Notes: generated from the sequence alone by a model not told the origin. A stretch of 64,000 bases of DNA from Octopus sinensis (GCF_006345805.1 NC_043001.1:63860001-63924000), one strand, 5' to 3'. Shown: positions 2,796 to 12,557, numbered from the stretch's first letter. Numbers and translations: made by a program.

Positions 2796-2957
2796 AAATA
2801 TTATTAGAGACAAAACCACTATTTTGCAAAACAAACAAGGAAAGACTTAATCAATACATAAAATTTTAATAAATAGTCTATTTATTAAAATTTTATGTAT
2901 TGATTAAGTCTTTCCTTGTTTGTTTTGCAAAATAGTGGTTTTGTCTCTAATAATATT

Positions 2958-2958
<1 letters not shown>
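2796..2958. repeat. Perfect fold-back palindrome (81-bp arms, 1-nt loop at 2877) of a PLE terminal-repeat-like family
   Basis: aaatattattagagacaaaacc...aataaatag-t-ctatttatt...ggttttgtctctaataatattt. The same family (tagggaataaatccaaatttacaggg...) recurs at ~9200-9423 and ~58550-58620. Confidence 0.9.
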
Positions 2959-2989
<31 letters not shown>

Positions 2990-3014
2990 ATTATATATAT
3001 ATATATATATGTGT

Positions 3015-3082
<68 letters not shown>

Positions 3083-3087
3083 TGTGG

Positions 3088-3118
<31 letters not shown>

Positions 3119-3130
3119 ATATACATATAA

Positions 3131-3193
<63 letters not shown>

Positions 3194-3211
3194 TATATAT
3201 GTGTGTGTGTG

Positions 3212-3242
<31 letters not shown>

Positions 3243-4072
3243 AAGTAGTATGTATGTATGTATGTATGTATGTATGTATGTATGTATGTATGTATGTATT
3301 AGGGAGATAGTATATTTTATATACACAGTTTATATCCTGTACACAGTATATATTATATAGACAGTACCTACTTTATAGACAGTAAATAACATTGGATAGT
3401 ATATATCATATTAACTGTACATTTTATACAGATCAGTATCAGAGTTTACAGTGTGCGCGCGTGCGTGTATGTATATATGTGTGTGTGTGTGTGCGTGTGT
3501 GTATGTAAGTATGTATACACACACACACACAAACACACATACACACACACACACATGTAATATAGACACTATATAAACCAGTGTCAGGCAATATGCGGTA
3601 GTTTGTATCTGTCAGTAAAAATTAATTTTCCTGTCCCTAAACATTTAAACCTCACATCTCCATATATGTAAGTATTATTATTAGTGTTGTTATAAGTGCT
3701 GTTGAAGAGATTGTAGAGGCAAATAAAAGCATTATACTCACGGATATCAAAGCATCTTCTTAACGTTGAATATTTCGAAGGGTTTAAGTATATATTCACT
3801 TTGTGGTCTTGTCAGAAATGTAGTCATTGTTGCGATCGATGTTGTTGCTGATGTTGGTGCTATTGGTGTTGTTGTTGTTGTTGTTGCTGTTGTTGTTGCT
3901 CGTGTCTTAAATGTAATAGCGTAATCACAATGGCAATGTCTTAAGCGTGTCAACAAGATTGGGCAGTCATTAGACAAGAGAAGGAAAAGTTGGAAAGATT
4001 GGAGTGGTGTGGAGAAAGGAGAAATCAGAAAATTCATACAGAAGAAGAAGGAGAGAAATGAAGATAAACTTC

Positions 4073-4816
4073 TTAAACTGCCAGTTCGGCGTACGCAGTT
4101 TCCAAATCGTCACACAAAACTTGGTATTTGTCTTTTTCGGCCTGTACTTCCGCCTCCAACCTATCGATTTCTCCTTCCAGTCGGGTCACGTTCGCTTCGG
4201 CTGTGGACGCTCGCAACTCGGCTTCACTCAATTTCTCCTGGTTGGTCTCTTCTTTTACACTCTTCAATTCAAGCATCTCTTCGCTACGAGTCAAGTCCAT
4301 TTCTTGTATTTGGATACGACGATGGAGAGCCTGGATCTCAGCTTCAAGTTCGGACACTTTCTGCTCAGAGGAGTTCAAGCGGTCAGTGGTGTTTTCGTGT
4401 TTAGAAGTCACCTCATCGAGATCTTTCTCTACGTTAGTGTGTGCTTTCTGAAGCCATGTCAGTTCTTCTTCCGTTTTTTCTTTAGCAGCATAACAATCCT
4501 TTACCTTGTCCAATTCATTCTGAGCATTGTCCAAGTCCTGTTCTAAGATGGCATATTTCTTCTGCTGCCAGACCAACTCGTCATCCAGCTTGTTCTTCGC
4601 TTTCTCTATATCCTGTATTCTTTCCAACTCTCGAGTTATATTATCTAGTTCATTTTCTAAACTACTGTATTTTTTCTGCCAAGATGTCAAATCTTGTTCC
4701 AACAAGAATTTTGCTTGCTCCGCTTCTTTAAGCTTCTTTTCAAATTCGTCTGCTTTTTCCTTGGCCGTTTCCGCCTCAAGGCGAAGGGATTTCATTTTCT
4801 GCTTGCAAACATCCAT
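4073..4816 (-). CDS. Tropomyosin-like coiled-coil protein, 247 aa, single coding exon
   Basis: N-terminus MDVCKQKMKSL resembles the tropomyosin MDAIKKKM start. EAEIQALHRRIQ..E.DL.RSEE and the C-terminal EIDRLEAEVQAEKDKY...DLETAYAELAV resemble molluscan tropomyosin (alignment from memory). Continuous heptads, good start context (aaccATGG), TAA at 4073-4075. Confidence 0.88.
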   Translation of the reverse strand: MDVCKQKMKSLRLEAETAKEKADEFEKKLKEAEQAKFLLEQDLTSWQKKYSSLENELDNITRELERIQDIEKAKNKLDDELVWQQKKYAILEQDLDNAQNELDKVKDCYAAKEKTEEELTWLQKAHTNVEKDLDEVTSKHENTTDRLNSSEQKVSELEAEIQALHRRIQIQEMDLTRSEEMLELKSVKEETNQEKLSEAELRASTAEANVTRLEGEIDRLEAEVQAEKDKYQVLCDDLETAYAELAV

Positions 4817-4823
4817 GGTTGAT

Positions 4824-4850
4824 CTGAAACAGTTACGATTTGCAACAAAA
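4824..4850 (-). promoter_or_regulatory. Putative 3' splice acceptor of a 5'UTR intron, 7 nt upstream of the tropomyosin-like ATG
   Basis: Minus strand reads ttttgttgcaaatcgtaactgtttcAG|atcaaccATGG; AG at 4825-4824. Confidence 0.55.
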
Positions 4851-5698
4851 CCTTTTTATTCTGAACTAATCGATGGAATATATACAGAACTTCGAGATTC
4901 CTTCTACTTTGCTTGAGGAATATTTCGTTTGGGGGGTAGTTGCTTCAGTTGGTTTAGATGTTTTTCTTCCCCTAAATATTTTTGTTTCTCGACTCAAGCA
5001 CTTCCTGACTTCACTGCCCGCTGCTAGCTGTAGACAGGCACACACGCACACACAACTAACCCAAACGGAGATAAGGTGGAATGAGATACAGAAAGTCAAA
5101 GAAACTACCTTGTCTGGTTGGCTGGTTAGTTGGCAGGCAGGCGCGTTGGCAGGCAGGCAGGCAGTTTGGCTGGCTGGCTGGCTGATTGGTAGGTTGGTGT
5201 AGAGGGGGAACCGGCTCAGTATGCCTGAGATTGTCGATGATGCTGGGAGGAGGAACAGGTAGAGAGAGGAAGAGAAAACGAACTAACACACACGCGTGTT
5301 TATTAATGGGAAACAGTTGAAGGGAGATAACTTACTAGCCATATTATTACTAAGATAAAAACCAAATAGGAATCTATACGAAGTGAGCAGTAGAAAGAGA
5401 GGGAGAGAAAAACTAAATGAACTGAAAAAGGAGGAGAAACACTGACTGAAATGAAAGAGAGGAAGACAAAGACTAGAGAGAAAAAAGGACCGAAAGACTA
5501 AATGAGATGAGAGGGTAGGGTAGAAAGACTAAAAGAAAGAGAGAGAGTGGGGAAGAGCGACCAACCTGCTAGACTTTATTCCTCTTTCGACAATATTTTA
5601 ACTATTTTACGTTTATCTACTTTTAGTAGAGATATTACTTGATAATACTTTAACATTGTTGATATTAATTATTGCATAAATACTAATACTTATAATTA

Positions 5699-11730: not shown

Positions 11731-12454
11731 AGCAATTTTATGTGATAGATGCATTCAATTAAATCGATGATTGAAAGGTACCATATTCTGCAATCATCGA
11801 CCCACGAAAGGTTGAAGTGTAACAATGACACTTGGTGGAAAGTGAACTCAGAAGAGAAAGAGACGAAACTAAATACAGCAGTTACACCCCATCTCAAAAA
11901 TTCTACCGACACTGTCACTCATTGCCTCCCTCAGAACTGTTAATAACGTTTTGTTTTATTTTATTTTAGACATACTTTCTTTTAGTTTCTGGTGATTTCC
12001 TGGTAAAATAAACGAAAATTTGATATTCTCCTTCACTTTCCAAATTCTCTCATCAAATTTAACCTTGTTAAACTTGACTAACTTTGTTGTAATAATGCCC
12101 ACCTGTTGGCACCTTCGTTCGCCAAAAATGATGATCATATATGTGTTAGATGCGAACAGCTGCTGTCCTAACTCGTTCATTAGTTGCTGCATACGAGTAG
12201 GAATTCTCTTCTCACAATTGCACCATCTACAGCTATAGCAAACTGCAGCCTACTCTCACATGACAGGCTTACTTATTGTTAAGAAACAGTCATCACAGAT
12301 ATATTTCACCGGGCCTCACCACCGCCGCCGCCGCCGCCGCCGCCGCAACAACCACCAACTATTGCCTCGTCAAAAGAAAAGCATTTCGTGTAATATGTAT
12401 GTCTGAATATGTTTGTATCTATGTATATATATGTGTATATATATATATATATAG

Positions 12455-12557
<103 letters not shown>

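Follow-up and report, generated by a model that had tools for sequence, protein, structure and literature searches.

In animals, tropomyosins form an unbroken heptad coiled coil that covers six or seven periods of actin, with length variants that come from alternative exons. A locus in the genome of Octopus sinensis raises the question of how a tropomyosin close in length to the short isoforms came to be encoded by a single exon, and what such a protein might do. The locus lies in a stretch of 64,000 nucleotides (the window) at about 63.86 Mb on chromosome CM016863.1 (GCA_006345805.1), where a gene with exactly the 247-amino-acid (aa) product discussed here is on record. The product is encoded on the minus strand, at window positions 4073-4816, by a complete single-exon coding sequence of 247 codons and a TAA stop, which represents a divergent tropomyosin paralogue. 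An earlier note on this DNA had described it as a convergent short tropomyosin built by triplication of a 38-aa unit, with two stammers and an in-phase deletion of 16 heptads. The analyses reported here establish this architecture, the membership of the gene in a family with intronless octopod paralogues of 171 and 209 aa, its conservation, and its transcription. Taken as a whole, it is reasonably probable that the open reading frame (ORF) is a functional, intronless, divergent tropomyosin gene that derives from a retrocopy, was expanded by modules, and encodes a protein that lines six periods of actin.

The 247-aa ORF scores 79.7 bits (E=3e-22) for the Pfam family Tropomyosin (PF00261), whose cut-off is 38.6. 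Tropomyosins in the PDB match it at 2.7e-13, with collinear N- and C-terminal blocks. The profile and alignment checks thus uphold the assignment to the tropomyosins. The octopod family as a whole is highly divergent, with about 30-46% identity to canonical tropomyosin and E-values to ordinary tropomyosins of only 1e-9 to 1e-11. The N-terminal head, residues 1-34 (4715-4816; this and the other parts of the gene are on the minus strand; MDVCKQKMKSLRLE...), is of the long-isoform, exon-1a-like type according to PDB, gastropod, and family alignments. Residues 1-68 align one to one with tropomyosin 1-68 in PDB chains, and 11-13 of the 34 head residues are identical to gastropod tropomyosin N-termini. 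Cys4 of the head falls at a core d position and is conserved across the octopod family. The C-terminal segment, residues 194-247 (4076-4237; HMMER domain 3), corresponds to canonical tropomyosin 230-283 and includes the overlap tail (…LCDDLETAYAELAV). It ends one residue short of the canonical C-terminus, and 26 of the 57 residues from 191 to 247 are identical to the octopus canonical tropomyosin. As had been claimed, both head-to-tail segments are retained in the alignments to PDB and octopus canonical tropomyosins, with residues 1-68 equivalent to tropomyosin 1-68 and residues 193-247 to 229-283; the overlap between them is predicted. The sequence has no proline and one glycine, and AlphaFold2 models a single helix over residues 2-246 with a mean predicted local distance difference test score of 92.5. 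A Foldseek search of this single-helix model against the PDB returned no matches, and such rods are uninformative in Foldseek.

After the head, a 38-aa unit occurs three times. Unit 1, residues 35-72 (4601-4714), aligns collinearly with tropomyosin 35-72 and carries W46 and K48K49. Unit 2, residues 73-110 (4487-4600), is an extra copy of tropomyosin 35-72, identified by alignment and by a break in the heptad register (a to f). Unit 3, residues 111-148 (4373-4486), is nearest to the unit of the 171-aa paralogues, again by alignment and a register break (f to d). The landmarks from which the repeat had been proposed are all present (AK at 35/73/111, QK at 47/85/123, LD at 57/95/133, and Trp at 46/83/121). 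At an offset of 38 the protein is identical to itself at 46 of 209 positions. Over all offsets, plain shuffling (2000 rounds) gave at most 39 matches and shuffling with heptad composition preserved (2000 rounds) at most 40, so that no shuffle reached the observed value. The units share 13-16 of 38 residues pairwise (16 between units 1 and 2), and unit 3 has 18-19 of 38 in common with the single module of the 171-aa proteins. Compared with molluscan tropomyosin, every unit agrees with segment 35-72 at 11-18 of 38 positions but with 73-110 at only 2-8 (for unit 2, 11-13 against 3). Since the match to 35-72 is far above that to 73-110, the units are true copies of one segment and not the trace of an ancient periodicity, and the triplication stands.

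At the DNA level the units are 47-53% identical, and their third codon positions agree at 9-16 of 38, which is the level of chance. With third codon positions randomised, the duplication must be old and have been held at the protein level. Tandem Repeats Finder did not detect the repeat in the DNA, because third codon positions are saturated and the repeat is visible only in the protein. The three Trp residues (46, 83, and 121) had also been called unusual. They are present, but they are less unusual than was claimed: Trp46 with Tyr50, as in unit 1, also occurs in P0021, a partial gastropod tropomyosin N-terminus from Candidula unifasciata (...NIWQKKYALLEND...), so this pair is not unique to the octopod family.

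Beyond the repeat, residues 149-187 (4256-4372; HMMER domain 2) correspond to canonical tropomyosin 73-111, or period 3, with R166R167 of the HRRIQ motif at R90R91. They are followed by the approximate deletion junction, residues 188-193 (4238-4255), where global alignments open one long gap and canonical residues from about 113 to 228 are absent. Against PDB tropomyosins, residues from about 143 align with 67 onward, at an offset of 76, and residues 128-242 align with 164-278, at an offset of -36. Against the octopus canonical tropomyosin (P0084, numbering +39), residues 149-188 correspond to 73-112 and 193-247 to 229-283, and 46 of the 99 aligned residues after the repeat are identical (46%). 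A one-unit paralogue aligned with Haliotis tropomyosin has a single 112-residue gap, with 1-117 equivalent to 1-117 and 118-171 to 230-283. The placement of the segment that contains HRRIQ (residues 149-190) is supported by 17 of 42 identities at offset 76, against 6 of 42 at the alternative offset. The three comparisons agree with the in-phase loss of 112 aa that had been read from the offsets +76 and -36. What is missing is periods 4, 5, and most of 6. The net loss is 16 whole heptads, which leaves the heptad phase intact; the breakpoint can be placed to within about 10 residues. In the canonical tropomyosin gene of O. bimaculoides the last 27-29 codons are on separate alternative exons, and the P0110 locus covered only these alternative last exons.

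The paralogues that share this architecture were found by exhaustive HMMER and profile searches and contig look-ups; a first, word-indexed protein search gave one relative. All are intronless. Argonauta hians has ORFs of 209 aa (L002:2415-3044) and 171 aa (L002:10001-10516) on one strand, about 7 kb apart. O. bimaculoides has a tandem pair of the same sizes (L004:4537-5166 and L004:14172-14687), and O. vulgaris has at least the 171-aa gene (L003:10001-10516, protein P0061). The size classes of 171, 209, and 247 aa contain one, two, and three modules, and the gaps in their alignments are exactly 38 and 76 residues. All three share the central deletion, Cys4, a Trp within the module, and the sequence ...CDDLE... 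close to the C-terminus. Identity of the window protein is 35% with the 209-aa proteins and 45-50% with the 171-aa proteins, whereas the Argonauta and Octopus orthologues of the 209- and 171-aa proteins are 83-85% identical (83% for the 209-aa protein). The 247-aa gene thus counts as an older, third paralogue and not as a species variant of the 209-aa gene. Because the deletion is common to all size classes, it comes most simply from the ancestor of the family and, judging from the alignments, probably predates the triplication. The upstream regions of the 209- and 171-aa genes are alike by eye, which fits their tandem duplication as DNA. Given the low identities among units, the extra units of the 209- and 247-aa genes may have one origin or separate ones. 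No second family member was found in the 64-kb window, which covers 59 kb upstream and about 5 kb downstream of the gene.

Automated annotation in octopus genomes has missed or mis-modelled these genes. The 171-aa genes are named 'tropomyosin-2-like' in Argonauta hians (GAB1608282.1) and 'tropomyosin Por p 1.0101' in O. bimaculoides. The O. bimaculoides model P0062 (L004:10001-14687; 193 aa) begins with 45 spliced-on residues of unrelated sequence, and the intact single-exon 171-aa ORF at this locus starts MEACKKKM. The public model looks mis-built, with a spurious N-terminus. No paper on the family was found in the literature on tropomyosin with cephalopod or octopus and retrogene or intronless.

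The heptad register was analysed with a seven-state model trained on 13 canonical 284-aa tropomyosins and a Viterbi path that penalises register jumps. As canonical controls served four long 284-aa tropomyosins (leave-one-out) together with two 245-aa isoforms of octopus. With a jump penalty of 8-10 bits, the controls and the three 171-aa paralogues have no register break, both 209-aa paralogues have one, and both 247-aa proteins have two. At a penalty of 6 the controls and the 171-aa proteins still have none, but the paths of the longer proteins are less stable: both 247-aa proteins and the 209-aa protein of Argonauta are given three breaks, and the 209-aa protein of O. bimaculoides two. The breaks in the 247-aa proteins are at about 65-79, the junction of units 1 and 2, and at about 104-115, the junction of units 2 and 3. 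The jumps, a to f and f to d, are each equivalent to a three-residue insertion, that is, a stammer. A register kept continuous throughout the window protein scores at best -28 bits, against +91 bits for the path with two breaks. Since 38 is five heptads and three residues, each added unit brings one stammer. The two stammers that had been proposed are thus recovered at the junctions of the units, and the protein departs by two +3 shifts from the unbroken register of animal tropomyosins. The positive control P0059 (161 aa, a fungal length; Logan/ENA) has a single stammer at about residue 66.

The ORF in the window is intact, with no introns or frame breaks, and an in-frame stop lies 14 codons 5' of the ATG, at 4856-4858. 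An ortholog is transcribed. Contig L005 of SRR9970006, 953 nt long, is a poly(A)-tailed complementary DNA (cDNA) that contains the three-unit ORF in full, preceded by a 171-nt 5' untranslated region (UTR) with a stop 2 codons before the ATG. A frameshift of one base inside an A9 run (L005:530-550, codons 124-125) is probably a homopolymer assembly or sequencing error and not a real disruption. The cDNA and the window gene are 74% identical in amino acids. The proportion of differing synonymous sites (pS) is 0.737, which is saturated, and that of nonsynonymous sites (pN) is 0.155, with an omega of about 0.06. Saturated synonymous sites at this pN imply strongly purifying selection. The architecture of the orthologous cDNA and the low omega indicate that the gene is functional and its three-unit architecture old. 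Constraint is seen in the paralogues as well, with pN of 0.08-0.10, saturated pS, and an omega of 0.16 between O. bimaculoides and O. vulgaris. The window protein shares 74-76% identity with two fragments from Tara Oceans metatranscriptomes (P0001 and P0002; runs ERR1711900 and ERR1711879). When the 5' UTR from the cDNA was mapped to the window, only low-complexity noise resulted, and exact look-up of P0001, P0084, and P0076 returned no encoding contig.

The poly(A)-tailed ortholog and the low omega show that this ORF is not an unexpressed sequence evolving neutrally. They bear directly on the reading that it is a processed pseudogene or chance ORF, a decaying tropomyosin retrocopy whose repeats and deletion are neutral rearrangements. 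Such a reading can point to the lack of introns, the repeat-rich region with reverse-transcriptase fragments nearby, and the absence of the product as an annotated protein from a large collection. It is nevertheless very improbable given the intact 247 codons, the same architecture in an ortholog at saturated pS, the further fragments in metatranscriptomes, and the conservation of the paralogues between Argonauta and Octopus, and the cDNA ortholog and purifying selection effectively refute it. There is scarcely more reason to take the ORF for one exon of a larger gene and its product for an incomplete model. A possible 3' splice acceptor (ctgtttcag; 4824-4832, minus strand), 7 nt upstream of the ATG, speaks for that view and could mark an intron in the 5' UTR. 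However, the genomic stop upstream of the ATG, the closer stop before the same ATG in the orthologous cDNA, the poly(A) soon after its stop codon, and the homology of the two ends of the ORF to the start and the end of tropomyosin confine any intron at most to the 5' UTR. Extremely improbable, finally, is the view that the 38-aa periodicity is the ancient quasi-repeat of about 39 residues found in all tropomyosins and the protein an ordinary short isoform. Canonical tropomyosin does consist of seven pseudo-repeats of 39-40 residues (PMC4714992), and the ORF is close in length to ordinary short isoforms. Yet the units fit segment 35-72 and not 73-110, the paralogues differ in length by exactly 38 and 76 residues, canonical controls have no register break, and octopus short isoforms carry another N-terminus. 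The family gaps, the register model, and the unit-versus-segment identities refute this view. An ordinary short isoform was rejected on the N-terminus: short isoforms of 245 aa from the canonical octopus gene owe their start (MAALDMVKNKL...; MAALDMVKNKLRTLSD) to an alternative N-terminal exon, and the window protein starts with the long-isoform (1a) N-terminus MDVCKQKM and not with that of exon 1b.

Three long ORFs on the plus strand overlap the gene in antisense (4004-4546, 4128-4451, and 4527-4916). They are most likely by-products of the biased codon content of a coiled coil, and not genes.

The coding sequence has no introns and its parent gene is multi-exon, as is the case for a retrogene, and a retrocopy would be the simplest explanation for this state. 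An ancestral intronless copy of the long isoform would have lost residues 113-228 or so to give a form of about 171 aa, which survives as a paralogue. Duplication in tandem and in frame of the segment equivalent to 35-72 would then have produced the 209-aa paralogue with two units and the 247-aa paralogue with three. A (CAA)n/(GTT)n microsatellite is present at window positions 3846-3900, about 170-270 nt downstream of the stop codon; a decayed poly(A) tail is a conceivable origin for it. In a family this old, as its saturated synonymous divergence shows, the marks of retroposition would have been erased.

Outside the stammers the rod is expected to stay one continuous helix, and the protein would form a parallel coiled-coil dimer. 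The retained termini argue for polymerisation head to tail. Along F-actin the 247-aa protein would cover six subunits and the paralogues four and five, and the stammers would overwind the coiled coil locally. With an overlap of about 11 residues subtracted and a period of 39.3 residues, (L-11)/39.3 is 4.07, 5.04, and 6.01 for lengths of 171, 209, and 247 aa; the three values are close to integral periods, as a matter of arithmetic only. Basic residues or pairs, read from the sequence, recur at 5/7, 48-49, 86-87, 124, 166-167, and 202/212, with a spacing of 38-42 residues. The duplicated segment carries the pair K48/K49, which belongs to the period-2 actin contact in published actin-tropomyosin models. 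In vertebrates troponin T binds the central region of tropomyosin. Since periods 4, 5, and most of 6, with the central troponin-T-binding region, are gone, a cytoskeletal or specialised filament stabiliser is a more likely role than that of a troponin-regulated muscle tropomyosin. The spacing of the basic sites is like that of the canonical pseudo-repeats, which are 39-40 residues long (PMC4714992).

Several observations weigh against a retrocopy-derived, actin-lining tropomyosin. No poly(A) remnant or target-site duplication was recognisable around the gene, and intron loss may be an alternative to retroposition for the intronless state. The exact 247-aa protein is not in the large protein collection, and a search for an annotated orthologue of the gene in O. 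bimaculoides, O. vulgaris, and Argonauta gave none; the distribution of the 247-aa form is accordingly poorly known. Some basic positions of the actin contact have been lost, with A125 and A208 where canonical tropomyosin has K or R. Two stammers 38 residues apart are unprecedented in actin-bound tropomyosin and might not fit the canonical geometry. The main rival explanation holds that the protein is a tropomyosin-derived coiled coil that no longer lines actin. It might instead serve as a structural rod or as an adaptor, or pair as a heterodimer with canonical tropomyosin or with the paralogues, with the 38-aa modules tuning the length of the rod for another partner. The low identity of the family to canonical tropomyosins and the modest E-values, the lack of stammers in every animal tropomyosin control, the conserved Cys4, Cys235, and Trp residues specific to the family, and the loss of several basic contact positions are all in its favour. 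The retention of both overlap termini is harder to reconcile with it, as is a length step of one actin period that leaves near-integral periods in all three paralogues. The same 38-aa step separates two yeast tropomyosins that bind actin, and fungal tropomyosins bind actin despite their stammer. We consider this rival possible but rather doubtful, and retain the actin-lining tropomyosin as the preferred explanation.

The gene lies in AT-rich DNA with abundant microsatellites and retroelement fragments, a typical setting in octopus. Large AT, TA, and CA/TG microsatellite blocks (734-1927, 2916-3600, 12416-12854, and 63500-63885) create long spurious ORFs. A tandem repeat with a 362-bp unit occupies positions 13208-14106 (2.5 copies, 99% identity). 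ORFs with RVT_1 reverse-transcriptase matches at 19825-21694 (plus strand) and 60150-62157 (minus strand) are fragments of retrotransposons without long terminal repeats. An 809-aa ORF at 43278-45707 (plus strand) has no Pfam match. By eye it contains a YRDD reverse-transcriptase-like motif, and its C-terminus resembles GIY-YIG (…VIYKC…LYLGCT…); it may be a Penelope-like retroelement.

The closest point of comparison is the canonical 284-aa, seven-period animal tropomyosin, such as octopus 'tropomyosin Tod p 1.0102'. The two share the Pfam family, the all-helical rod, an N-terminus of the type MD-x-x-K-x-K-M, and a tail ending in ...AELA. Collinear blocks cover canonical residues 1-72, 73-112, and 229-283, and in the half after the repeat identity is about 46%. 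The canonical gene, however, is multi-exon and alternatively spliced, whereas the 247-aa gene is intronless; its product lacks residues 113-228 or so, has segment 35-72 three times, and contains two stammers where animal tropomyosins are unbroken. Cys4, Cys235, and the Trp residues are specific to the octopod family. P0084, P0092, P0109, and P0125 of O. vulgaris and P0076 and P0110 of O. bimaculoides are products of the canonical octopus tropomyosin gene. From this gene come several short isoforms of 245 aa, whose internal exons are mutually exclusive, and also forms of about 395 aa with a long, low-complexity, Lys/Ser-rich N-terminal extension.

Animal short isoforms (about 245-248 aa, six periods) arise from an internal promoter and alternative first exon, and an N-terminus of the exon-1b type takes the place of exons 1a and 2. 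They are nearly equal in length to the window protein, which implies a span of six actins. The octopus 245-aa isoforms keep the whole central region, whereas in the window protein part of periods 1-2 is present three times and periods 4-6 are gone. It has kept the long-type head and reached 247 aa by a route other than that of the 245-aa isoforms, so the description of it as a convergent short tropomyosin is apt. The octopod 171- and 209-aa paralogues have the same deletion, intronless state, Cys4, ...CDDLE..., and 38-aa module as the 247-aa gene; they differ in having one or two modules, are 35-50% identical to it, and lie in tandem at a separate locus.

It is tentatively suggested that this intronless family is private to octopods and a modular length series, in which a 171-aa core and added modules of 38 residues, each one actin period, make cables that span four, five, and six actins, in a fungal-like convergence. 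If so, these would be, to our knowledge, the first animal tropomyosins of fewer than six periods and the first with heptad stammers. The series would amount to a natural experiment on the way in which the number of periods and local overwinding determine the fit to F-actin, and octopod length variants would perhaps be sorted to distinct actin structures. Provided that actin is bound as predicted, the 171-, 209-, and 247-aa proteins could serve to probe the effect of period number, stammers, and overwinding on actin affinity, on cable geometry, and on the sorting of tropomyosins among filament populations.

Both stammers and a 38-aa duplication are already known from fungal tropomyosins. In yeast, the 199 aa of Tpm1 (five actins) correspond to the 161 aa of Tpm2 (four actins) plus a 38-aa duplication (PMC12440208, PMC2120352), so that these budding-yeast paralogues likewise differ by one internal actin period. 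A stammer likewise interrupts the heptads of fungal tropomyosins, among them Tpm1, Tpm2, and the 161-aa Cdc8 of fission yeast (PMC3805550, PMC11626781). The crystal structure of Cdc8 shows a decreased local pitch (PMC11626781, PMC3805550). Stammers overwind a coiled coil, and Cdc8, with its one stammer, has a pitch of about 89-90 residues, against about 103 for mammalian Tpm1.1, and more local curvature (PMC11626781). The four- and five-period lengths of the fungal proteins resemble those of the octopod 171- and 209-aa paralogues. The fungal stammer, however, is single and central, whereas the 247-aa octopus protein has two, at the junctions of its duplications. There is no close link of descent: the best matches of the window protein outside its family are animal tropomyosins, and P0059 reaches only E=9e-4. 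Judged by such matches, the octopod proteins are nearest to molluscan tropomyosins, and their resemblance to fungal ones is a matter of design and not of descent. The octopod route to a change in length was to delete 16 heptads in phase and then to add whole periods of 38 residues that break the heptads. Yeast reached the same solution, a period of 38 residues, independently.

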